46,474 nt of DNA from Ministeria vibrans ATCC 50519 (taxonomy: Eukaryota; Protista; Filasterea). The notes beneath the pieces were generated by a model that saw only the letters and a list, made by a program, of their open reading frames with translations, was not told where the DNA came from and made no database searches. Positions 2,830 to 20,604 of the stretch are shown piece after piece. Where the stretch lies: the NCBI GenBank assembly GCA_943704425.1, contig CALSCP010002846.1, positions 1 to 46,474 of the forward strand, read 5' to 3'. Made by a program: the position numbers and the translations under genes. The number at the start of each line of letters is the position of its first letter. The stretch's first letter is position 1.

Positions 2830-5800
2830 ATGCCGATGCGACGACTGGCTCTGGTGCTGATGCTGTGTTTGCTGACCCCGTCGGAAATGGCCCCTGCGTC
2901 GCCGTGTACCGCCACCAGCTCCTGTCAGACTGGATCGACGTGTGTAGGCGGGTATCGGCAGACGCAGTTCTGGAACGGCGCGTCTGTCGCAGATGGCGCT
3001 CTCGGCTCCTTTTCCTTCTACGGCGCACCGCACAGCCCGTCCGCCGGCTCTCTCACCGTCACGACCAGCATCCTGTTCCCGTCGGACGCCTTCCTGCATG
3101 TCGTCATCAGCAGGACGCAGTTCCAAGTCTCGTTTGTGCCGCAGTCTCTGGACTCTTGTCTGGTCCAAAGCGAAACGGTCCATTTCAACACCCAAGAACT
3201 CAGCGCCATGGTCGCTGACGATGCCACCGTCTTCGTTGAGGTACTCACCACTGCCAACCACCACATCACCACACCGACACTCGCTGATTGTCCTTTTCTG
3301 CCTTGTTTAACTCCCAATGCTTTTTTTTTTTTTGCATCTCTTATTATTCTTACTCTATTAATTTATCATCAGACTCTAAATCATTATGACGTTCTTCTTT
3401 TATTTTTCTCAATCTTAAATTAGGTGTATGTAAATGGTGTCACGGCTGTCTGTGGTGACGGAGCTTACATTGAGGTACGTTTGCACCCCCAAGTGAGCCG
3501 CTTAGTCTAAAACTCTCTCTTTGTAGGTGACACTCGCATTGGACACTCTCGATCAACATTACTGCGAGTGTCCCTCCGGCGTCTCGGGTCCTCACTGCGG
3601 TATTGCTCAGAATGAATGCGACAGCAGCAACATCACTTGCGCAAACGGCGGGCTTTGTCAAAGCCGCTTTGGCTCGGCCACTCTTGAAGTACTACTTCAA
3701 AATATCTCTTGCAACCAGACTCTCAACCCCTCTTTTAGCAATCGGGCGTAGACAGTTCCAACACTCTTGTATATACGTTTGGATCGACCTCTCTCTCGCA
3801 ATTCGAATTACGATCCGACATTGCAAACGGAACTCTGATTCTTGAAAGTACATCAAACACACTCTCTCGAAAACCCTCACTCACTCTCTTTTTGTTTCTC
3901 AGCAAATGGCGATTTCTTCAGCGTATCAGAATACGCATCAATCAATTCAAATGGCTTCAAAGTACCCAAAACGCCCACTCTGCACACACACATAAATAAG
4001 TTTTTCCTTTTTGTTTTAGAGCACTGCCTTTACTGCATCAAGTGCTTCCGACTGCTCCGTGCGCGTCGACCGGATCCCTTTGACTGAATTTCAAGTGCTT
4101 GACCTTCTCACGTCCTCTCTTTTTGCCGTCTTCACTTCCTCTGTCAGTTCTCAAACCTGCCCTTCAGCGACACTTAAAATCACTCTTGAAATCGAGACGC
4201 TCTCGCGCTCGTCTCCCTGCGTGTGCTCATCCGGCTTCACCGGTTTCGACTGCACCGACGAAAGCCGATGTGTGTCGGGCGTCAATGACTGTCTCAACGG
4301 TGCAACCTGTCAAACGGGGTACACTCAGTCGCAGGTCGTGTCCGAGCCCACCGGCGACCAATCGCCCTCCTTTATCTTTGATTCTCTTCCCCTGACCTTT
4401 ACGGGGGATGCTCTCATCACTGTCGCAACGGTACTGCATGATGAATCAATGGAATTCATTCTAACATACTTACACTCACTCGCTCTTGCATGCACCGTCA
4501 CACAACTTTAGAACGGTGACTTCTCATCCTCCTCGCAAGTCGCCTATGTCGCCGGTCGTGCTCTTTTTGCCACGAGCTACCCAGTCCAGACAGCCTGTCC
4601 CTACCAGACTGAGTCTTTCACAATGAGCAGTGACGAGTTTCGTCGCAGAATAGCCCCTTTCAGCAACAACATCATGTAAGGATACGTTTCCACTCACCTC
4701 ACTCACAGTTTTCCATTTCATCGCTTGTTGTACTTTTCTGTTACAACAAAAGTATGATATTTGTCCCTCACTCACAAAAATAATTTTCCTTTATATATAT
4801 AGTCTTCCTGTACTGTTTTCTTCGTCTGTCTCCATTAACAACTGCCAGGGAATCAGTGCTTTCTTCCAAGTGACCCTGTCGCTCAGTGGCAGCCTTGAAG
4901 ACCGCACCTGTCTCTGCCCCAGTCTGTACGACGGCGAGCTGTGCGATGTAACTATCAACGAGTGCGCCCTCTCTAACCCCTCTGTCTGTCTCAACGGTGG
5001 AACCTGCAATCCCCGGTATGCATCGAGTTATTTCCCTTTTGCGCTCTACCCCTTCCTCACACTTTCTTCTTTCGCTTAGTTATACGGACGTCACACATCA
5101 AATGGACAATGTCTATCATCCCACAACAAAAACCTTCTCCGCGTTCGGCACTGACATTTCCTATACCAACATCAAAAGCGCCAAAGTATCACAAATGGCA
5201 TGTTCTGTCCCGTCCAACAGTATCTCAATCATTCCATTCCTTTTAGCTGACTGTTGTCTCAAATGGTGATTTTGGATCTTCAAGTGAGTACATGTCAATG
5301 CTCATGCCCGGAGATATCACTGTATTCCGTTCTATTGCATCCGGTAAGTATTATTGTGTGTTGCGTTGACTTGCTCTCTTTTCACTCTAAACGTTTTTTT
5401 GTTTAGATTGTATTGTTCGCACGGAAACATTTGAGTTTCCCACGCAAACGGCGGCGCAACTTGTGTCGCTTTCGAGCTATGGTGTGCTTTTTTCAAGCAC
5501 AGTTTCCCTTTCAGCGTGCTCCGACCCTCTGGCAACATTTTCTCTTCGTGTCGAATCGACCACCATGGCACCCTGTACCTGCCCAACGGGATTCACTGGT
5601 GCATTGTGTGAGACCGACATTGACGAATGTAGCGCCTCCAACCCGTGTGTTATGCTCCACAATCGTGATTGTGTCAACCATCTGTCGCTCACGGGTGACT
5701 ATGTGGGACCTGTAGACTCTAGTCACGGTCCCTTTGACATCACGATACCCTTTCCCTCGCCCATCCAGTCGGATCAAGGCACTTGGTAAAAAAGAGTGAA

Positions 5801-8800
5801 AGAAAGAAGAAAAGAAAAAAAGTGCGCCACTTAAGCCCTTATGTTTTCTTATTAATTCAGGCTTATGACTGTCGTTGCTCGCTCCGACTTAAGCAGCACA
5901 AACGAGTTCCTTGCCATCTCCACCTCGTCGGGTTTCTCTCACGACTTTTTCACTACCATCACTCGCGTGGACTGCCTCGATTTTACCGAATCAGTTTCCC
6001 TCACTCCATCTCAGGTAAAATATCATCCAAGTAAAGTTGGCGCAATCTTGCGATTCATTTTTGTTTCAACCCTTTCGACTTCNNNNNNNNNNAAAAAAAA
6101 AAAAAAAAAAAAAAATAGTAATAAGAAAAAACCGATGCACACACGTTTTTTTCTAGGTCTCGTCTATGTTGACAACGTCGGGCTTTGTCTTTACTGTGAG
6201 CCCCTCTAGCGCAGTTGCATCTTTTTGTGACGATACATTTGTCAATATTACTCTCGAGCTTGTCGGCGGCGCCTATGTGTGCCCTTGCACTGCTGGCTTC
6301 TCAGGCTCATCCTGCGGCGGTGACGTTGATGAATGTGCCCTGGGCACAGCGCAGTGCTCTAACTCGCGCACTTGCAACAACGCATTCAACATGTCTCAGG
6401 TACATGGCCCCCCCGTGGTCGGCGCCCTCTACGAATACGAACTGCCTGTGCCATTTCCGTTGGGCGAGCCCCAGGGCAACTTCTATCTCAACGTCACAGC
6501 CCTGCTCAATTTTGCGCCTAAAAACAACCAAATCCTCGTGTCGAATAATGATGCACAACTGTTCGAGCTTCCCTTCCGATTCTTCTTTGGCGCATCTGCT
6601 TTGGACATTGAGTGTCGAACAGTCTCTCAAGTTTTTCCGCTCACCTACGACCAAGTGCTAAGTGTTACGCACAATGGTACCCAACCCGCCCGATTTAACA
6701 TCTCCACTCACGGGGAAAGGGGCACTATTGATCCGTTTGCGTGCACCGACGTGCCTGGCGTTGGTGCAACATTTATCAAATTGGGACTCGAAGTGGTCGC
6801 TGGCACGTACATTTGCGACTGTCCCTACCCGTACACGGGCGTCACGTGTGACACCCTTGTGGACGAGTGTGCCTCCTATCCATGCGTACACGGCCTTTGT
6901 ACCATGACTCCCGTCGGCTACCAATGTACCTGTTCATCGGGCGCCTCCGGCCCCACCTGCGCCGTCACCTCCGGAGCGTGCTCTGGGACACAACAGCCCT
7001 CAACACTGTGCGGCAGCCACGGCACTTGTCTGCCCACCTTCTACCAGAAGACGTACAGCGTCTCGTCATTCCTACCAGCTATCTACCCAATCTCTTTCTC
7101 TTTTAATGATGCCAGTCTCACTCCGTCTGCAGTCGTCTCGCTCATTGTCGAGCTCAGCAACGCCAATGTCGACGATATACGCATAATTGATTCTGCCTCC
7201 TACGTCCTCTCCTCTCACAATGTCTCCTTCACCGTCGGAAACTACTCTCAGACCCTCTTTGCAGCCGACGCCGGCTACTGTCTTGCCTCCAACCAACAGG
7301 GCGCCTCGATTCCAACCGACCAGTTCATTGCCAGTGGGAACAAAGTAATGCTTGACCTCTCCTCAGTACTTGCCTGTGGCCTCACCGATCCCAGCATCAC
7401 TGTCACTTTAAACGTCGCGAACGCTCACGCAACCCAGTGTGACTGTGACCCAGGGTAACACCAAGACAACACGCAAAGACACGAAATCGCTCTGAAACAA
7501 AAATAAAAACTCTTTTCTTTTCTTCAGGTACGCTGGAGCGAAATGTGACGAGGACTATGACGAGTGCAGTTCCTCGCCGTGTCCTACCACATTATCAACA
7601 CCGCGTGTGTGCACCGACTCGTTTACACAGACTGTGTTCCATGGAAACGCCTTCTATCCCAACGTTCAGTGGTTCAATTTTAGTGTGCCCGAGCCGTTTC
7701 CCTCAAGCGACAGCCTGTGGACCCTCACGGCCACGACCAATGTTGACCTTAATCTTGACTCGGAGTACATCCTGTTGCAGACGGAGTTCACTTCATTCCA
7801 TCTATTTGAATTGCCTCCTTTTGCTCCCGACTGTACCACAATCAATACGACGCTGTCTTTCTCTGGCGCCGACCTGCTCACCCTCAGCAACCAGGGCACT
7901 TCCGAAATCTCTATTCTCGCCTCGTATGTCAATGTCCAAGGCTTCTGTCCCAACAGTTATCTCAGTATGACTCTCTCCCTTGTCTCGCGTGGCTTTGTCT
8001 GCGCTTGTGTGCACCCCATGACCGGGTAGGTTGCACGACGATACTACTGATCCACTGACCTTCTATATTGCTTTGTTTCTTTTCTCTCCATCACGTTGTT
8101 TCCTTTCCATCACGTTGTTTCCTTTCCATCACGTTGTTTCCTCTCTATCACGTTGTTTCCTCTCTATCACGTTGTTTCCTCTCTATCACGTTGTTTCCTC
8201 TCTATTACGTTGCTTTCTCTCTATCACGCTGCTTCCTCTCTGTCACGCTGCTTCCTCTCTGTCACGCTGTTTCCTCTCCCTCCTCTTTCTCCTCCTGCTT
8301 TCTATTGTGGTTTAGACTGAATTGCACAACGGAAATAGACACATGTGCCTCGTCTCCGTGTCTCAATGGTGGGACATGCACGAATGTAGCCGGTAGCTAC
8401 ACATGCACGTGTCTTTTGGGGCTTACAGGCATCAACTGTGAAGTGGACGAACAAGAGTGCATCTCGTCCCCCTGCCAAAATGGTGCAAGTTGTACGGATC
8501 GCTATGGTCTGTTTGGCAATTCGGCGACATTGTTTCCTTCACAAGGCATTGCAACCATGTTGAATCTTTTCAATGCGCCTTTGACGTCGATTTCAGCAGG
8601 CGTCATTTTTGTGTCTGCCACAGGTTTCCGATTTCCGGAGAACAATAATTTCCCGACCTATATTCACATCGCCGCTCTAGACGTACCATCTATTTCGGGG
8701 GATCTCTTCAAGTACACTGGAAGTCCCAGGTGTGATGACGCTGACACCGCACAACTGTTCCTCAATGCCACCCAAGCACAACAGCTTCTGGCGGCCTTCA

Positions 8801-11800
8801 TTATCAATTTCCAAATTAGCCTTTTTTCTGTCTCAACTGGATCCTGCGACGCGCCGACAGTCACACTTTCCCTCTACGTCAGCGTCAACGAGTCTTTGTG
8901 TCACTGCGCGCCGGGATTCACTGGTGATGTGTGCGACATCTCAATCAACGAGTGTGCCTCGTCACCGTGTGCCAACGGTGCCAATTGCATCGACTCTAAC
9001 GGTCTGTTCACATGCGTGTGTCCTGCCGGGCGCACCGGTGCCCTTTGTGAGAGCGACGTTTCAGAGTGTGCTTCGCAACCCTGTGAAAATGGTGGTACCT
9101 GCATCGATTCGCTCACCCTTGACCATTTTCTGTGCGTGTGCCAGCTTGGATTCACCGGCATCGTTTGCGAAACTGACATCGACGAGTGTGTCTCGACTCC
9201 CTGCTTTAATGGCGCCACTTGCATTGACCAGGTCAATTCAGTTGTTTGTGTCTGTCTTTCGGGATTTGCCGGTGACTTTTGCACCACCAACATTGACGAT
9301 TGTGCCTTGCAACCGTGTGAAAATGGCGCCACGTGTATCGACGGAACTGGTAGTTTTGACTGTGTGTGTCTTGCCGGCTATACCGGCGTCTTGTGTGAGA
9401 CCGACGTTGACGACTGTGTTTCATCTCCCTGTCGCAATGGGGGTGTGTGTCGCGACGACAACAATCGCTTCTCGTGCACCTGTGTGCCTGGATTCTCTGG
9501 TCCCACTTGTGCGTTTGATCTCAACGAGTGTGACTCGTCCCCGTGCCTCAACGGTGGTGCTTGCAACAACCACGCCAATGGCTACTCGTGCGACTGTCCC
9601 GTCGGATTGAGCGGTGCTCAGTGCCAGAGTAATGTCAACGAGTGTGCCTCGGGACCTTGTGAGAATGGCGCTACTTGTGTCGACACCATTGCGACCTACT
9701 CGTGTGTGTGTCCTCGCGGTGTTACCGGCATTCAATGCGAATCCATCGTCGACGAGTGTGCCTCGTCTCCCTGTTGGAATGGTGCTACCTGTCTTGATTT
9801 TTCAGGCGCGTATATTTGCGCATGCCACGCCGGAACCACCGGGGAAAACTGCGAGTCTGACATTGACGAGGTACATCAAAAAAAAAAGTCTTTCTCTAAC
9901 CTCCTCATTATAGTGCTCTTCATTTCCTTGTGACAACGGTGGTACGTGTTCGACAGGCGCTATCTTTGGGGTGTTTTCATGTACCTGTCCCGATGGATAC
10001 AATGGCAGCCGCTGTGGAGTGGACGTCGACGAGTGTGCATCATCGCCATGCACCCATGGCGGCACTTGCATTGATCGCGTTGCGGGTTTTGTGTGTCAGT
10101 GTGCCCTTGGTTTTACCGGTGCTCAATGTCTAGTTGACATTGATGAGTGTGCCAGTAGTCCGTGTCTCAACGGCGCACTCTGCTCGACGCCCGCCGTCGA
10201 TGCCTTCCGTTGCGCTTGTCCAGCCGGTATCACGGGTGCCCAATGCCAAACCGACATTGACGAATGCGCCTCTAATCCCTGTGAATTCGGCTCGTGTCAA
10301 GACCTCAGTGCCACCTTCAAGTGTCTATGCGATCCTTTTTACACGGGTAAGACGTGTGACACGCAAATTGACGAGTGTGAATCGTCGCCGTGTGCAAATG
10401 GAGCCAGCTGCACGGACCAAGGTCGTGGATTCCTCTGCGAATGTACCAAAGGCTACACCAACGCACAGTGCCAGACAAACATTGACGAGTGTGAATCTTC
10501 ACCGTGTAAACACGGCGGAGTGTGTCATGATGCTGTGGATGCCTTTGTGTGTGAGTGCCCTCAGGGTTTTACTGGTAGTCAGTGTGAAGAGGACGTGGAC
10601 GAGTGTGCGTCGCAACCGTGCGGCGCAGGCATTGCCGTCTCGTGCGTGGATTTGCCCGGCGACTTCCAATGCATCTGTGGGCAGGGTGTGGCGTCGGGCG
10701 GTCACGACTGTGACGAGGAGTGTCTGTCGCATCCCTGTGCCAATGGTGGCACATGTACCGATCAGCTGTTGGGTTTTAATTGCACCTGCGCTGCCGGCTT
10801 TTTTGGTCATGACTGCTCGGCCGACACCGACGAGTGTGCATCGTGTCCGTGTGTCAATGCCGCGACTTGTGACGATATCCCCAACGGCTTTGTGTGTCAG
10901 TGTCTTGCCGGTTTTACAGGAACCCATTGTCAGAGTGATATCGACGAGTGTGCCTCGGATCCCTGCGAGCACGGGGGCACATGTGTCAACGCAGTCGTGC
11001 CAGGCATATTTGCGTGTCACTGCCCGACCGGTTTCAGTGGCGTTGTATGCGACGTGAACGTGAACGATTGTGAGTCAAGTCCCTGTTATCATGGCGGCTC
11101 ATGCTTGGATGGCGTGGACAGCTACCAGTGTGACTGTGCCGTGGGGTTTACCGGCGCTTCGTGCTCGACCGATATTGACGAGTGTGTTTCGTCGCCCTGT
11201 GAAAATGGCGCCGAGTGTCTTGACCAGTCGGGAGTCTTTACGTGTCTCTGTCCGACCGGTTTCACCGACGCTCGATGTGCCATCAACATTGACGACTGTG
11301 CAGCGCCTCCTCTCCTGGACCAAGCGACTGTGTGTCACCATGGAGGCACGTGCAGTGACGGTGTGGCAAGTTTTGTCTGTGACTGTCCAGCCGGTTACAC
11401 AGGCACGACGTGTGCGACGGAAATTGACGAGTGTTCTTCTGCTCCCTGTGAGCATGGCGACTGCACCGACTTGTTTGATGGGTTCCATTGCTTATGTCCA
11501 CCAGGGATTACGGGCGCCACCTGTGCCGACGACATTGATGAGTGTGTGTCGTCACCATGTGCCTTTGGGTCAACGTGTGTCAACCAAATCAACATGGGTG
11601 CCACGTGCCTGTGTCCGTGTGGACGCACGGGTGTTGCGTGCGACGTAGACATTGACGAGTGCCAGTCGGGTCCGTGTGAAAATGGAGCGACGTGCACCGA
11701 TGATGTATGCAATATACAGTGCATGTGTGCCGCCGGCTTTGTCGGCTCACGGTGTCAGCAGGAAATCAATGAATGTGTCTCGTCGCCCTGCCAGAACGCC

Positions 11801-14800
11801 GCCACGTGTTTGGACCTTGTCAATTCGTTTGACTGTGTCTGTGCCTCCGGGTTCACTGGCATCCTGTGCGACGTGGACATCGATGAGTGTCTCTCGTCAC
11901 CTTGTGCCGCTGCCGGCGCCTGTTCCGATGCTATTGATGGGTTCACGTGCGCCTGCCGTATTGGCTTCACTGGCACTCGCTGCGAGACCAACATTGACGA
12001 GTGTGCCTCGTCGCCGTGTCTCAATAATGGCATGTGTAGTGATGGCGTCGACAGTTTCTTGTGTGCGTGTCCATATTATTTTGCCGGTACACACTGTGAG
12101 TCTGCCGTAGACGATTGTTACTATACCGGCTGCCTGAACGGCGCGTCGTGTGTGGACTCATTTGATGCAGATGGGCCACAATGCATCTGCCCTGCGGGAT
12201 TCACGGGAGCCAAGTGTGAGACGGATATATTCGAGTGCGCCTCGGGACCCTGTGGTACCCATGGTGTCTGTCTCGATCTGGAAAACGCCTTCCGTTGCGT
12301 GTGCAATCCGGGATTTACGGGCACGCACTGTGAATCGGACATTGACGAGTGTGCTTCGTCGCCGTGCGCTCATATGGGAACGTGTACCGCTGCCACTGGT
12401 GCATCAAACTTGGGGTTTGTCTGCACTTGCGTGACAGGCTACACGGGGACACGCTGCGAGACAAACGTTGACGATTGCGATGCGAATTGGTGTGCTAATG
12501 GCGGTACCTGTGTGGACCAAGTTGATGGTTACCACTGCGCCTGTGCCGCCGGTTACACGGGAAGTGGGTGCGAGCAGAACGTTGATGAGTGTGCTTCGTC
12601 GCCGTGTGGATCCAACGGAATGTGTGTGGATGCAGTGCATAGCTACACGTGTCAGTGCAATATTGGCTTCACTGGTGAGGTGTGTGAGACTAATTTGGAT
12701 CAATGTGCATCGTCGCCCTGCCACCAGCACGGCACTTGTCTGAGCATATTGAGTGGACCTGCTGGGTTTCTGTGCTCGTGCAACAATGGCTACACGGGAC
12801 CACAGTGTGAGACAGACATTGATGACTGCTTGTCGTCGCCCTGTGTCAATGATGGCGAGTGTCTCGATGGACTCAACGAATTCACCTGCCTTTGCCTGGC
12901 TTCGTTTACGGGCGCCACCTGCGAGGTTTCGCTTGACCATTGTGAATCGAGTCCCTGTGTGAATGGTGCCTCATGCAGCACTGCCGTGACTGGTTTTGTC
13001 TGCGCGTGTGCTTCAGGCTTTTTTGGCAATCGCTGCGAGGCGGACACGGACGAGTGTCGCAGCAGTCCCTGTGCGAATGGTGCCACTTGTCAGGATATTG
13101 TTTCCGGTTTTACCTGTGACTGCCCTGCCTCCTTCACTGGCCTGACCTGTGACGAAGTACTAGTGGACCAGTGTGCCTCATCGCCCTGTGCCAATGGTGC
13201 GTCGTGCCATGCCACATCCAATCGCTTTTTCTGCACCTGTGCGTCTGGTTTTACGGGTGTCTCGTGTTTGGAAACCATCAACGAATGTGCCTCTGAGCCT
13301 TGCCTTAATGGTGGAACGTGCCGCGACGACTTGGTTGCGTTTGTGTGCGTCTGCCCCGCCGGGTACACTGGCGCTGTGTGTGCGACTGACGTGGACGAGT
13401 GTGAGTCTGAGCCGTGTCTCAATGGTGGGACGTGTCACGATTGGGTTAGTAGTTTCTCGTGCGTGTGTGCGGTTGGATATACTGGTGAGCAGTGCGAGAC
13501 AGCCGGCATTGCGTTTGCGTGTGCGTCTTCGCCCTGTCATAATGGCGCGACGTGCAGTGAGAGTGTCAGCAGTCTGCAATTTTATTTGTGTTCGTGTCCA
13601 TCTGGCTTTCGGGGTATTGACTGCGCCGAGAACTTTGAGGAGTGTACATCGTCGCCGTGCCAGAATGGCGGAGTGTGTCAGGATGGCACGGATGGGTTCA
13701 CGTGTGTGTGCAGTGCGCCATTCACGGGACGTCTCTGTGACGCTACGTCAGGCCTGTGTTCATCAATGCACTGTCTTAATGGGGGCACCTGTGAGGAGTT
13801 GGGGCAACAGCAGCTCGCCTACCAGTGTCGCTGTGTCCAAGGCTTCCTTGGCTCCCACTGCTCTGTTCCCATTGCCCTTGTGCCCACTACTATTGGTGCT
13901 GTTGTCAATCCGACACCGATTGAAACGGGCGACGGCGAGTCGCACTTGCGAACGCTCAGCGTGCAGCAGAGCACAGTTGTTGTAGAGGCTGCGGCGCAGA
14001 CCACTGCTGCGGAAGTGGTACTTGGGACGATTTCAACGGTGGTGGTTGAGACGACTGGTGTGGCGAAGATCACGGTTGTTAGTGCGGTGGTTGAAACGAC
14101 AGCTGCTGGTGCAGAGTTTGTTGAGACAACTATTGCTGGCGCAGATTTAGTTGAGACGACTGCTGCCTGTGTAGCGGCTGTTGAGACGACTGTTGTTGGC
14201 GCAGTGGCGGTTGAGACAAGTGATGCTGGTGTAGTGGCCGCTGAGACGACTGCTATTGGTGCAGAGGCCGCTGAGACGACTGATTTTGGTGCAGAGGCTG
14301 TCGAGACGACAGCTGTTGAAGCAGTGGCTGATGAGACGACTGTTGTTGGTGCAAAGACGACCGGTGTTTTTGCATTTGCCGCTAAGACGAGTGCTGCTAA
14401 AGCAGTGGCTGTTGAGACGACTGTTGTTGGAGCAGTGGCTGCTGAGACGACAGTTGTTGAAGCCGTATCTATTGAGACGACTGTTGTTGGTGCAGTGGCT
14501 CCTGAGACGAGTACTGCCGGTGTAGTGGCCGTTGAGACGACTACTGCCGGTGTAGTGGCTGCTGAGACGACTGCTGCCGGTGTAGTGGCAGCTGAGACGA
14601 CTGTTGTTGGTGCAGTGGCTGTTGAGACGACAGTTGTTGAAGCAGTATCTATTGAAACGACTGTTGTTGGTGCAGTGGCTGCTGAGACGAGTGCTGCCGG
14701 TGTAGTGGCCGTTGAGACGACTGTTGAGACGACAGCTGCCGGTGCAGCGGCTGTTGAGACGACTGTTGTTGGTGCAGTGGCTGTTGAGACGACAGCTGTT

Positions 14801-17800
14801 GAAGCAGTATCTATTGAGACGACTGTTGTTGGTGTAGTGGCTGCTGAGACGACTGATGCCGGTGTAATGGCTGCTGAGACGACTGATGCCGGTGTAATGG
14901 CTGCTGAGACGACTGTTTTTGAAGCATTGGCCGTTGAGACGACTGTTGTTGGTGCAGTGGCTGTTGAGACGACTGCTTTTGGTGTAGTGGCTGCTGAAAC
15001 GACTGCTGTCGGTGTAGTGGCTGCTGAGACGACTGTTGTTGGTGCAGTGGCTGTTGAGACGACTGTTGTTGGTGTAATGGCTGTTGAGACGACTGCTGCC
15101 GGTGTAGTTGCTGCTGAGACGACTGCTGCCGGTGTAGTGGCTGTTGAGACGACTGTTGTTGGTGCAGTGGCTGTTGAGACGACTGTTGTTGGTGTAATGG
15201 CTGTTGAGACGACTGCTGTCGGTGTAGTGGCTGTTGAGACGACTGCTGCCGGTGCAGTGGCTGCTGAGACGACTGCTGCCGGTGTAGTGGCTGTTGAGAC
15301 GACTGTTGTTGGTGCAGTGGCCGTTGAGACGACTGTTGTTGGTGCAGTGGCTGTTGAGACGACTGCTGCCGGTGCAGTGGCTGCTGAGACGACTGCTGCC
15401 GGTGTAGTGGCTGTTGAGACGACTGTTGTTGGTGCAGTGGCTGTTGAGACGACTGTTGTTGGTGCAGTGGCTGTTGAGACGACTGCTGCCGGTGTAGTGG
15501 CTGTTGAGACGACTGTTGTTGGTGTAGTGGCCGTTGAGACGACTGCTGCCGGTGTAGTGGCTGTTGAGACGACTGCTGCCGGTGTAGTGGCAGCTGAGAC
15601 GACTGTTGTTGGTGCGGTGGCTGCTGAGACGACTGCTGCCGGAGCAGTATCTATTGAAACGACTGTTGTTGGTGCAGTGGCTGCTGAGACGACAGCTGCC
15701 GGTGTAGTGGCTGTTGAGACGACTATTGTTGGTGCGGTGGCTGCTGAGACGACTGATGCCGGTGTAATGGCTGCTGAGACGACTGCTGCCGGTGTAGTGG
15801 CTGTTGAGACGACTATTGTTGGTGCGGTGGCTGCTGAGACGACTGATGCCGGTGTAATGGCTGCTGAGACGACTGATGCCGGTGTAATGGCTGCTGAGAC
15901 GACTGTTTTTGAAGCATTGGCCGTTGAGACGACTGTTGTTGGTGCAGTGGCTGTTGAGACGACTGCNNNNNNNNNNNNNNNNNNNNNNNNNNNNNNNNNN
16001 NNNNNNNNNNNNNNNNNNNNNNNNNNNNNNNNNNNNNNNNNNNNNNNNNNNNNNNNNNNNNNNTAATGGCTGCTGAGACGACTGATGCCGGTGTAATGGC
16101 TGCTGAGACGACTGTTTTTGAAGCATTGGCCGTTGAGACGACTGTTGTTGGTGCAGTGGCTGTTGAGACGACTGTTGTTGGTGTAGTGGCCGTTGAGACG
16201 ACTGTTGTTGGTGTAATGGCTGTTGAGACGACTGCTGCCGGTGCAGTGGCTGCTAAGACGACTGCTGCCGGTGTAGTGGCTGTTGAGACGACTATTGTTG
16301 GTGCGGTGGCTGTTGAGACGACTGCTGCCGGTGTAGTTGCTGCTGAGACGACTGATGCCGGTGTAGTGGCTGTTGAGACGACTGCTGCCGGTGTAGTGGC
16401 TGCTGAGACGACTGTTGTTGGTGCAGTGGCTGTTGAGACGACTGTTGTTGGTGTAGTGGCCGTTGAGACGACTGTTGTTGGTGTAACGGCTGTTGAGACG
16501 ACTGTTGTTGGTGTAGTGGCTGTTGAGACGACTGCTGCCGGTGCAGTGGCTGTTGAGACGACTGCTGCCGGTGCAGTGGCTGTTGAGACGACTGCTGCCG
16601 GTGTAGTGGCTGCTGAGACGACTGCTGCCGGAGCAGTATCTATTGAAACGACTGTTGTTGGTGCAGTGGCTGCTGAGACGACAGCTGCCGGTGTAGTGGC
16701 TGCTGAGACGACTGCTGCCGGAGCAGTATCTATTGAAACGACTGTTGTTGGTGCAGTGGCTGCTGAAACGACAGCTGCCGGAGCAGTATCTATTGAAACG
16801 ACTGTTGTTGGTGCAGTGGCTGTTGAGACGACAGCTGTTGAAGCAGTATTTATTGAGACGACTGCTGCCGGTGTAGTGGCTGCTGAGACGACTGCTGTCC
16901 GTGTAGTGGCTGTTGCGACGACTGTTGCCGGTGCATTGGCTGCTGAGACGACCATTGGTGCAGCGGCTGTTGAGACGACAGTTGTTGGTGCGAAGGTAGC
17001 TCAGACAACCGTTGCTAATGCAGCGGCTGCTGTTACGACCGCCACACCTGTTGAGCCTCAGACAACTTCTGCAGCGGTTCCTGTCCCGCAGACAACACTC
17101 TCTACCGAGACGACTATCGTTGCCCCCGATGCTGCGTCGACCTCCGCAAGTGCCCCGCTCAACTGCGACTCATCCCCCTGCCAATCGGGCGCTTCGTGTG
17201 TGAGTAAGGTGAACGACTTTACGTGCATCTGCCTCAAAGGGTTCACCGGCACACTCTGCGAGACGGACATTGACGATTGTGTCAACTTTCCGTGTGTGGG
17301 TGGTGGCACATGTGTGGACGCCGTTCTTGGATTCACGTGCACCTGCGCGGCCGGACGCACCGGCAATCAGTGCGAGACGCTCATTGATGAGTGTGCGTCA
17401 TCGCCATGTTTCAATGGAGCGAAGTGCATCGACGGCCCTGCCTCGTTTGAGTGTGTTTGTGTCCCAGGCTACACGGGCGCCACTTGTGCCGTCAATATGG
17501 ACGAGTGCGCGTCAGCGCCGTGTTTGAACAACGGTATCTGCGTTGACGGAATCAACGCCTTTACGTGTACGTGTAACACGACCTTCTATGGACGACGGTG
17601 TGAGCTGCTGCAGGACAATTGTGCTGGCGAGACGTGCAGTGGACGTGGAACGTGCATCTCAGACTCGAGTGTGTCTTTTGTGTGCGACTGTGAGCCGCTG
17701 TACACAGGCGAGCGCTGCGAAATGACCCTGTGCGACTCGAGTCCATGTGCCAATGGCGGCTCTTGCTCCACCACAACCGTCTCGTCTGATGGCTCGCCCC

Positions 17801-19255
17801 TCTGCTCATGCCCCCCCGCCTACAGTGGCGTCTCGTGTGAGGTCTCGCTGTGCGGTGTCTCTCAAGGATCGCATGCGCTCACCGTGTCCACCACACCACT
17901 GCGCTTCAACATTGTACCATCCGTGTTCACTGTCGTTTTCCCGTCTTCCTCCGTCCCACCGCTGCCCTTTTCCTTCTCTACCAGCAGCTTTGTCAGTGGT
18001 GATGCGTGTGATTCGACCGCCTTTGGTGAGCTTCCGTCTACCGTCATGCTGTCGAGTCTGTTTGAGCTGACGGGCAGCGCGACGGGCAACTTTCCGGGTC
18101 GTGGGGTTTTTGTTGAATTCTCAATGGGCAGTGCGTTCACGTCGGACGCAACTATTCTGTACAAGTCGAGTGCGTCTGACACAACATGGGAAACGGCCGA
18201 GAACATTGAGCGGGACGCGGTGACGGGCCGTGTGACGGGCTGGATGCGCCACTTCTCATTTGTCGGGGTGTTTTCGGTGACGCAGACGATTGGTGTGACG
18301 GGCCAGGACAGCGGCGGTGGCGGATCGAGCATGGTGCCCATCATTGCTGCCGTTGTGGGGATTGTGCTTGTCGTTGCAATCGTGGCGGTGGCCGTGGTGG
18401 TGTACCGCCGCCGCAAGGGCCGAGATAGTGGCACGCATAGCATGCGGTGGATGCCGAACAAGCCGAAGAAGGCGAAGAAGAGCAAGAACTCGATGGGCGC
18501 ACCGGGCAGCGACAATATGTTTGCGTTGAGTGTGGGGCCGTCGTCTCTTGCGTCGTATGAGGAGTCTTTTGAAATGCAACCGACTGGCATGATGAATTTC
18601 GTCGAAGGGACTGTGCAGGCGACACAGAGTCTCTTTGGCATCAACACGACCCCGCTCAATCCATCCTATGGTAGTGTCACGAGCGGTGCAGTACCTGCAC
18701 TACATCAACAACAGCCCACTGGTCTTCTGCTCAAGTCTAGCTATACTGGCTCAAGTAGCAGTAAGGGTCCAGCGCTGTCGGGTCCCGTCTACGAGACCAT
18801 CCACGACGGCGCTGCCACACCCGCCTACGAGACCATCCCGTACCCAATCGCCGAACTCACGGGCGCTTCCTATGTGTCAACATCAGACACACTCCAGAGC
18901 AACCAATCGTTTTCGAGCAACGTCTATGTCTCCAAGCAGCACTCCACGCTCTCCCAACAACAGGGCCTTGTGCCGCCCCCACCGCTGCCCACCGCTCGCG
19001 ACACCATGGTCACCCCTGTCCCTGCGCCTCGCCCTCCCAAGCGTCCCTCTGGCGACGGTGCCGCCCCTGTGCCCGCATCCCGTCCCGAGCGACCCGATCG
19101 AAAGCGCATCTCCATGTACGCGTACATTGAGCATGTCCCCGAAAATGACGCTCCCGATGTTGTTATTGAAGCCGCAGCAGCGGCAGCGCCACGTACCGGT
19201 GCGGCAAGGGTCCTCACCATTGGTGATTCTTCTTCTTCTTCTTCTTCTTCTTCTT

Positions 19256-19308
<53 letters not shown>

Positions 19309-20604
19309 CCGCCAACCCTAACATCAACGCCCGCCCCCAATGCGAACTACGACGTGCTCCCGGCCATCCGTCCGAAGCCACAGGGTCCAGTGTACCTGAC
19401 TCTGAAGGGCGCTGGCTCACACAGCTCCACTATTGCGCGCGCCAACGAGCTTCCTCTTGTGGACTACGAGGGCGAAGTGCGCCCCGACCGCATCAGCCTC
19501 ATTCCTAATGATTTGGACGGCTCAACGCAGGACCTGGGACGCGGCAACTTTGGCATTGTGTCGCGAGGCATGTTTGTGACGGCCGCCAAGGGCACGCCTA
19601 CACAGGTTGCGGTGAAGCACCTGGGCGCAGACGCAGATGAGGAGACGCGCACGTCCTTCCTCAACGAGATTCGCATGTACGAGCGACTGCGCCACCCGCA
19701 CATTACTGCCGTGCTCGCCAAGACGGTCGCGTCGCCCGACGCCTGTGAGTGGCGCCTTGCTCTTGAGCTCGCCAAGTACGACTTGCGCACCTTCCTGACC
19801 AATCGCTCGCACACTCTCTCCTTCGACGCCCGCATCCTCCTGTGCACCCACGTCTTTGCTGCCGGTAGCTTCCTTGCGTCGCAGCGTGTCGTCCATCGTG
19901 ACATTGCCCCGCGCAACTTTCTTATCTTTGCATCGCCGCTCGACCCGTCCGGCCGCACTCTCGTCATTAAACTCGCTGACTTTGGGCTCGCCCGTGAGTG
20001 TCTTGAGCGCGTTCCAGACTACCCCAACACGCCCGTCTACCTTGAACGCGAGCGCCTTCATCTTCCCCCTTGCTCTGCTCCCGAGACCATGGAGCGCGGG
20101 CGTGCCATGGAGCGTAGTGACGTGTTTGCTGTGGGTGTCACTGTAAGACTTATATTTTTGTCTTTGACTTTGTTAAAACTACAATAATAATATTATTATG
20201 ACTGTATCAATATACTGACTTGACCTGTGTTTCTCTTTCTTTATTGTGTTTAGTTGTGGGAAATCTGGAATGGGGCGTCGCTGGACAGTGACGCGCGGTT
20301 TGAGCAGTTCCCTGGGCCGTACTATTTGTGGCTGCGCGAACGCACAGGACTGCCCGACATTGACAACTGTCCACCTGTGATGTAAGTGAAAACAATTCTT
20401 GTGGTGTGTGATTGCGACTGACATTCACACATGCAATCTACTTCGTTTGTCATTAGAATGGCGCTGATCAATTGGTGTGTGCTTGACGATCCAATGCGAC
20501 GCCCGACCTTTGCGGACCTCACACAGGCGCTGTTGGATGAGCAACGCGCGCCCGGAAGCAGTGTTGTCAACAATATGCTTCTCCCGTCCGCCACCGATTT
20601 GTAG
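2830..20604 (+). CDS. Giant EGF-repeat single-pass receptor tyrosine kinase, about 5,400 aa, about 18 exons
   Basis: Signal peptide MPMRRLALVLMLCLL; about 59 EGF-like units; 10-aa repeat stalk; ZU5-like domain; TM helix at 18331-18405 followed by RRRK. Kinase motifs GRGNFG, VAVK, HRDIAPRN, KLADFGLAR, APE, SDVF, LWEI and RRPTF. GT-AG introns keep the frame (e.g. 3241-3423, 3475-3526, 3689-3738, 9871-9913, 20143-20253, 20382-20456). Ends ...PSATDL*. The frame break at the N-gap 15967-16063 is treated as an assembly artefact. Confidence 0.9.
2905..8934 (+). other. Region encoding nine split-EGF modules (domain inserted between EGF C3 and C4) plus two intact EGFs
   Basis: Each module reads C-x4-10-C-x5-9-C [110-150 aa insert] C-x-C-x8-C after splicing. 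The inserts share a GD(F/L)xxxxE(Y/F)-like motif, a Cys pair and a terminal TLxL strand. Confidence 0.8.
8085..8277 (+). repeat. Intronic minisatellite with an 18-20 nt unit (ctctctatcacgttgtttcc)
   Basis: About 10 tandem degenerate copies inside RTK intron 8026-8315. Confidence 0.85.
8935..13861 (+). repeat. Array of 42 tandem EGF-like domains, mostly calcium-binding (DIDEC...) type
   Basis: Manual count of 6-Cys units with D-I/V-D/N-E-C starts and C-x-C-x2-G-F/Y-T-G-x2-C ends. Confidence 0.9.
14040..16990 (+). repeat. Coding 30-nt minisatellite encoding about 95 copies of a 10-aa unit (V/A)ETT(V/A)(V/A)G(V/A)VA; interrupted by N-gap 15967-16063
   Basis: The unit gctgttgagacgactgttgttggtgcagtg repeats in frame within the RTK ectodomain. 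Confidence 0.95.
17850..18276 (+). other. ZU5-like juxtamembrane domain ending in HFS
   Basis: ...MLSSLFELTGSATGNFPGRGVFVEF...ILYKS...TWE...VTGWMRHFSFVGVF follows the ZU5 pattern (S-x-x-x-E, F-x2-3-V, W, terminal HFS). HFS codons are at 18250-18258. Confidence 0.65.
19228..19307 (+). repeat. (TCT)n then (GCA)n trinucleotide tracts encoding polySer/polyAla in the RTK cytoplasmic region
   Basis: Seen directly, in frame. Confidence 0.9.

Follow-up and report, generated by a model that had tools for sequence, protein, structure and literature searches.

Epidermal growth factor domains interrupted by a predicted jelly-roll domain in a receptor tyrosine kinase gene of the filasterean Ministeria vibrans

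In laminin, an LE domain, which is an epidermal growth factor (EGF)-like domain, can hold an L4 domain between its Cys3 and Cys4; L4 has no assigned function, and bends are seen at the L4 and LF positions (PMC5338690). L4 (domain IV type A, Laminin_B, PF00052) is about 180-200 residues long, interrupts an LE domain with eight cysteines and occurs once or twice per laminin chain. The L4 domain is nested likewise in perlecan. Another point of comparison is provided by unicellular relatives of animals: the I3 repeat of ichthyosporean receptor tyrosine kinases has been compared with prokaryotic adhesins and forms repetitive, plastic arrays (PMC4342544). Literature searches for split or interrupted EGF domains returned only papers on split eGFP, and one on filasterean receptor kinases gave no relevant paper.

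Here, we describe a gene in which the Cys3-Cys4 position of EGF domains is occupied in series. The window, that is, the whole stretch of DNA analyzed, is the 46,474-nt contig CALSCP010002846.1 of Ministeria vibrans ATCC 50519 (assembly GCA_943704425.1), and its positions 2830-9000, on the + strand, encode the N-terminal ~1,580 residues of a giant type-I receptor tyrosine kinase. Nine of the first 11 EGF domains of this receptor host a nested domain. The overall best explanation, and in our judgment a probable one, is a receptor whose EGF domains carry jelly-roll domains as binding heads, the composite having a single origin. A first-pass annotation of the sequence had counted nine such split EGFs, and nine are found in the exon model, with Cys3-Cys4 segments of 126-146 residues. 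The same annotation did not recognize the architecture from any receptor described, and here laminin L4 in LE is a precedent (PMC5338690). The likeness to L4, i.e., the shared Cys3-Cys4 position, is architectural only: the host is a six-cysteine EGF rather than the eight-cysteine LE, the inserts have ~130 residues versus ~180-200, nine are nested in one protein and ~70 in the genome versus one or two per laminin chain, and, unlike L4, the inserts belong to a receptor kinase and to a different, uncurated family. The annotation expected the inserts to fall outside described EGF-nested families; indeed, PF00052 matches no insert at E<=1 or E<=5 and nothing in the genome, the genome search having been run without a positive control.

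The window is eukaryotic in character and rich in introns, and the exon model runs from an ATG at 2830 to 9000, with 15 exons and 14 introns and a frame free of stop codons. All 14 introns are of the GT-AG type, with sizes of 50-290 nt. The spliced model contains 11 C-x-C-x8-C tails, nine closing split EGFs and two closing ordinary ones. Each split EGF begins normally with its first three cysteines, and the host order C1..C2..C3..C4-x-C5-x8-C6 is kept in the nine modules of the window as well as in 37 paralogous modules (see below). The Cys3-Cys4 spacing is 8-12 residues in at least 44 ordinary EGFs encoded by this gene (exactly 8 in 33 of them); the nine modules lie outside this short-hairpin range, and the departure is the nested domain itself. 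The tail C-x-C-P-x-G-(Y/F)-T-G-x-x-C has an invariant G across the 46 modules, and an aromatic residue is found at Cys4-2 in 28 of them. Because the tail consensus and this aromatic are kept, the nested domain replaces the tip of the hairpin. Every insert of the nine has exactly two cysteines, so that a module has six plus two conserved cysteines. Pfam models of the EGF type match the split halves weakly.

The modules follow one another on the + strand, and their scores below are bits from a profile built from 36 paralogous inserts outside the window, with none from the window. Module 1 (2890-3598) has a 128-aa insert at 2944-3562 with introns at 3241-3423 and 3475-3526 (29.9 bits). The insert of module 2 (3599-4253) covers 3659-4217, 132 aa with three introns, and scores 61.7 bits across exon junctions. 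Those of module 3 (4254-4944; insert 4311-4908, 130 aa, two introns) and module 4 (4945-5609; insert 5008-5573, 126 aa, three introns) score 38.5 and 45.6 bits, respectively. Module 5 (5610-6315) scores highest, with 67.8 bits for a 130-aa insert at 5673-6279 holding introns 11 (5786-5860) and 12 (6015-6156). In module 6 (6316-6849), the 146-aa insert at 6376-6813 lies in an uninterrupted frame and scores 15.4 bits; it is also matched by a second profile that includes module 6 itself. Between modules 6 and 7 lies an ordinary EGF at 6850-6960 (PF00008, residues 238-266 of the 6157-7455 frame). Module 7 (6961-7546; insert 7030-7437, 136 aa), whose tail is spread over the intron at 7455-7527, is a weak match of 8.6 bits with a conserved cysteine register. 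Module 8 (7547-8325; insert 7613-7999, 129 aa), the tail of which is likewise spread over an intron (8026-8315), scores 57.9 bits. The second ordinary EGF, at 8326-8439 (PF00008, residues 9-38 of the 8320-9001 frame), precedes module 9 (8440-8934), whose 135-aa insert at 8494-8898 lies in an uninterrupted frame and is a weak match of 11.5 bits; this is the window module that was folded.

The inserts were said in the first-pass annotation to be coding and mutually homologous, and both points are borne out. When applied to the spliced model, the paralogue-only profile finds exactly nine domains, one per insert, seven of them at 15-68 bits. The motifs quoted earlier are in register across the nine, namely NGDF...E, a Cys, SSSV..C and a closing TL.L strand. 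Pairwise identity among the nine inserts is 10.7-27.4% (mean 17.8%), and the EGF halves share 36.1% on average. For modules 1-5, the searches were made exon by exon, and the joined spliced protein was used in local profile and alignment work only; in that work, the profile alignments of these modules cross exon junctions, which gives independent support to the splice model.

These results bear on a simple alternative, in which the inserts are removed as introns or skipped as cassette exons, leaving transcripts for ordinary EGFs. Modules 1-5 are indeed rich in introns, and the splice model is predicted rather than read-based. However, in modules 6-9 the insert frames run uninterrupted for 129-146 codons, all nine inserts fit a protein profile shared by hundreds of bacterial proteins, the alignments continue through predicted exon junctions, and removal of an insert would leave zero residues for the hairpin. 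Furthermore, four runs of one study (X1-X4) contain 0.86-0.87 of the 31-mers sampled from 6200-9000. Were the two predicted introns alone missing, the share should be ~0.85; the DNA-like runs X8 and X9 give 0.97, and loss of the four inserts within this region would lower the share to <0.3; the RNA nature of X1-X4 is itself only guessed. The intron or cassette-exon explanation is thus very improbable in our estimate.

One assembly gap falls within the modules, at 6083-6092, in noncoding sequence inside intron 12 and beside a poly-A run. The intron has its donor GT at 6015 and its acceptor AG at 6155-6156, and the profile alignment of module 5 passes over the junction of exons 12 and 13 with just one gap, of a single residue. 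As module 5 is contiguous over this junction, no coding sequence has been lost at the gap. An independent scaffold of 1,782 nt from a metagenome in the European Nucleotide Archive (L031) matches 6094-7841 with 99.8% identity but leaves the gap unbridged, since on the left, beyond the poly-A run, it ends in a different low-complexity sequence. L031 retains intron 13 and is therefore DNA, and its identity means that the organism or a very close strain was present in that environmental sample.

The nested domain had been called unknown, and the searches show that it is not private to this gene: it recurs in ~990 protein clusters, mostly bacterial, as well as in ~70 nested copies on ~20 contigs of this genome. 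Compared with 1.84 billion proteins, a profile made from 40 of the protist inserts gave 990 matches at E<=1e-3, of which 223 reached E<=1e-10. The best matches are giant and mostly bacterial proteins, secreted or on the cell surface, with up to nine copies of the domain. Named carriers belong to Acidobacteriota, Planctomycetota and unclassified bacteria, and their annotations include subtilisin-family protease, choice-of-anchor D, CARDB, leucine-rich repeat (LRR) and GC-type dockerin, some with sorting tails of the type IX secretion system (T9SS). One diatom protein (Bacillariaceae) has a signal peptide and four tandem copies. Bacterial and diatom copies are free-standing, either in tandem or alternating with immunoglobulin (Ig)-like, HYR and GC-dockerin modules, and differ in this from the EGF-nested inserts, with which they share motifs and the cysteine pair. 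Among the 150 matches listed, four are flanked by EGF, and all of these are open-frame fragments from the same organism or a near-identical strain: P0039 and P0100 are 100 and 98% identical to this genome, and P0031 and P0044 are near-identical to exons 13 and 14 of the window. Per-domain E-values are ~1e-5 to 1e-22 for the listed proteins of the family, and bacterial copies are 25-40% identical to the inserts, two short metagenomic proteins (P0116 and P0098) being in that range.

The hallmarks of the family are G-D-(L/F)-G-x3-E, D-C, D-G, S-x-x-V, a second Cys and V-x-L-x-Y. Columns were counted over 311 near-full-length copies from the listed matches, P0031 and P0044 being excluded as fragments of the window; D is found in 91%, E in 86%, V in 94%, Y in 89% and each of the two cysteines in 79%. 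Both insert cysteines are present in 247 copies, neither in 64 and a single one in none; in other words, about one fifth of the copies lack the disulfide. This perfect co-occurrence is strong evidence that the insert cysteines pair together and not with those of the EGF, in agreement with the earlier proposal that the inserts are disulfide-bonded. On the basis of sequence similarity, the nested domain is a true homologue of an uncurated family of bacterial surface proteins with a putative jelly-roll fold. Neither Pfam nor NCBIfam has a model covering the domain, whether in the window inserts, the paralogues or the bacterial members searched; none of the PDB sequences matches the profile even at E<=10, and a single insert gave no match against proteins of 610-1940 aa. 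Two further Pfam entries were considered and set aside. PF24878 (YkcB_C), a weak lead in the family protein P0001, has no match in this genome, and PF01483, the P domain of proprotein convertases, matches at nine other places in the genome and at none of the inserts.

Since the top-scoring database matches are bacterial, it may be asked whether the resemblance comes from contamination or a chimeric assembly. Against this, the inserts share the reading frame of the EGF halves on either side and have GT-AG introns of their own, the EGF context recurs ~70 times on ~20 contigs, the independent metagenome scaffold reproduces part of the array, and the bacterial copies are only distantly similar, with none of them EGF-flanked among the listed matches. 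We regard an artifact of this kind as exceedingly improbable.

The first-pass annotation had predicted a beta-sandwich or jelly roll looping out of the Cys3-Cys4 hairpin, and AlphaFold2 models of two single modules are consistent with this prediction. Module 9, folded with an alignment of 38 modules, reached a mean predicted local distance difference test (pLDDT) score of 81 and a predicted template modeling (pTM) score of 0.70, and one paralogous module reached 91.4 and 0.81. The two models have a common strand pattern with eight to nine strands and one helix, arranged as a jelly-roll sandwich. In both, the first strand is long and begins at Cys3, and the last, also long, finishes at Cys4-Cys5, so that the terminal strands of the models appear like the hairpin extended into the sandwich. 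The architecture may then be understood as follows: the tip of the Cys3-Cys4 hairpin would be replaced by an autonomous jelly roll, ~125-145 residues long and containing one helix and an internal disulfide, and the first and last strands of the sandwich would continue the two strands of the hairpin, by which the EGF rod stays continuous and the sandwich projects sideways.

Structural neighbors of the models are jelly rolls of many kinds. The highest Z scores are those of the carbohydrate-binding domain of BcsB (9.4), the N-domain of PNGase F (8.9), nanovirus and satellite-virus capsids (8.7-8.8), the furin P domain (8.6) and Tk-SP (8.5), with CBM35, CBM36 and CBM6 at about 7. CBM35 (2w46) is found at Z 6.2 and 7.1, far down the lists of generic jelly rolls, and no laminin L4 chain is among the top 50 fold matches. 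Foldseek against the PDB gave only weak jelly-roll matches (template modeling (TM) score <=0.47), and the best score in the ESM Atlas was 0.86, with no credible relative. The P domains of furin and Kex2, Tk-SP, PNGase F and BcsB have the same general eight-stranded jelly roll as that predicted for the inserts (Z 8.3-9.4, root-mean-square deviation 2.4-4.5 Å, 91-128 aligned residues), but they have no sequence relation to the inserts, and Z values in this range are common for models without a true match. Some bacterial homologues of the inserts are attached to subtilases, and Tk-SP is a subtilase as well. Because the fold matches are generic and none is prominent, function cannot be read from the fold.

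How the composite arose can be approached from its other copies in the genome, which was searched as 29.7 Mb in 2,860 contigs. With one paralogous module as the query, ~70 full-span matches on ~20 contigs were obtained, a lower bound. At the loci fetched, 37 further modules show three EGF cysteines, a two-cysteine insert and C-x-C-x8-C, and the nesting is at the same EGF position in all 46 copies checked (nine in the window and 37 paralogues). A tree constrained to hold the 46 protist inserts as a single clade exceeds the free quick tree in likelihood, and the approximately unbiased test does not reject it (p-AU 0.955); free trees of the nested domain are poorly resolved, and only the constrained test is informative. 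The unrejected one-clade tree, together with the invariant nesting position, fits a single grafting followed by duplication of the composite unit. Most likely, judging from these sequence comparisons, the EGF-plus-jelly-roll composite arose once in this lineage and was then duplicated to ~70 copies spread over many EGF-rich membrane proteins, which accords with the earlier suggestion that the unit was amplified as a whole.

Two paralogous loci illustrate the spread of the module. On contig C2121 (~114264-117650, L022), a pair of split-EGF modules leads directly into a transmembrane helix, after which come a proline/serine-rich tail and no kinase; the split-EGF module is therefore not confined to receptor kinases. 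On contig C1769 (~43480-53640; L017, L018 and L030), module matches are paired exactly 5,559 nt apart in one frame of 3,641 aa. Either several modules were recently duplicated together in a large tandem event, or the duplication is one of the assembly.

A more far-reaching scenario, which we consider possible rather than probable, is that a bacterial jelly roll was acquired, perhaps by horizontal transfer, was grafted once into an EGF and was amplified into a lineage-specific recognition repertoire of ~70 heads. Such a repertoire would be rapidly diversifying, e.g., for prey bacteria, substrates or partners, and would be displayed on receptor kinases and other EGF-rich membrane proteins. Its underlying principle, a series of domains nested in an EGF rod, is one for which we found only sporadic use elsewhere, in the laminins of animals (PMC5338690).

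As to function, the likeliest role of the nested domain, as we infer it by analogy, is that of a lateral head for ligand binding or adhesion. The bacterial context, the predicted fold and the strong divergence of the heads point to this role. The heads would bind ligands or mediate adhesion, a common function of such jelly rolls in surface proteins of bacteria, occupancy would be relayed to the kinase, and the conserved acidic D/E/D positions may hold a structural Ca2+. The main rival to binding heads is an architectural role, in which the inserts stiffen, kink or space the EGF rod, or bring about lateral self-association of the receptor, a part of the kind suggested for L4 and LF in laminin. 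In its favor are laminin L4, which occupies the same Cys3-Cys4 position, has no known ligand and lies, together with LF, where bends are seen (PMC5338690), and the conserved residues of the family, which are mostly in core strands and the disulfide. However, bacterial carriers also hold peptidase, LRR, HYR, Ig-like and dockerin modules, a typical context of binding modules, and the nine heads have diverged further than the more conserved EGF halves that carry them, as is expected of diversified surfaces. A purely architectural role is unlikely in our view, although it is the most serious competitor of the binding heads.

Several points speak against the reading of the array as single-origin, EGF-hosted binding heads. 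The splice model is predicted and not taken from RNA at the level of reads, and the assignment of X1-X4 to RNA is a guess. The scores of modules 7 and 9 are close to the best of 200 shuffled inserts (8.8 bits); for these two modules, the support comes mainly from the cysteine register and the alignment. The EGF disulfide pattern (1-3, 2-4 and 5-6) and the pairing of the terminal strands are presumed, and the fold matches are middling (Z ~9) with none prominent. The poor tree of the domain demonstrates neither a single origin nor a direction of transfer. Binding of ligands, glycans or Ca2+ is inferred only, and laminin L4, the closest architectural analogue, is itself without an assigned function (PMC5338690).

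By analogy, the split-EGF receptor fits a pattern among protists of lineage-specific, adhesin-like repeats in receptor kinases. Like the I3 repeat, it is a case of a unicellular animal relative with a receptor-kinase ectodomain made of repeats that resemble prokaryotic proteins (adhesins for I3); I3 is, however, a different domain and is not nested in EGF. The receptor described here is a concrete example of such ectodomains being assembled, in the unicellular relatives of animals, from parts that are lineage-specific and often bacterial-like. The family of ~990 protein clusters, uncurated at present, has a confident predicted fold and clear motifs and is ready for definition. The one documented case of Cys3-Cys4 nesting that we found is laminin L4 (PMC5338690), and here the nesting is serial and on the scale of a genome, a natural setting in which to study the tolerance of EGF rods for grafted domains and the way they display them. 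Should the heads prove to bind ligands, their array would be of interest to protein engineering as a compact scaffold.

The remainder of the gene supplies the receptor context. The modules are preceded by the start codon and a hydrophobic signal peptide of 20 residues (2830-2889, + strand, from the model translation). From 8935 onward, on the same strand, open frames and Pfam matches give the other parts: the at least 44 ordinary EGFs, a stalk of V-E-T-T repeats, six more EGFs, a transmembrane helix and a tyrosine kinase domain (PF07714, 5.4e-31). The hydrophobic helix precedes PF07714, both being within the 15958-20184 open frame. The predicted product thus has what defines a receptor tyrosine kinase, i.e., a signal peptide, an ectodomain, one transmembrane helix and a cytoplasmic kinase encoded by a single gene, and this single-gene reading spans a second assembly gap at ~15967-16065. 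The exon model itself covers 2830-9000 of the contig, the N-terminal part of this larger gene.

Some repetitive sequences were also observed along the gene. The stalk, at 14000-17100, is a long and near-perfect array of V-E-T-T-(A/V)-(A/V)-G-type repeats. It is interrupted by the run of N at ~15967-16065. Intron 11 holds a purine-rich low-complexity stretch at 5788-5825. In intron 14 (8026-8315), the region 8040-8290 is mostly an intronic minisatellite, its C/T-rich unit of ~20 nt (cacgttgtttcct-type) being repeated in tandem.

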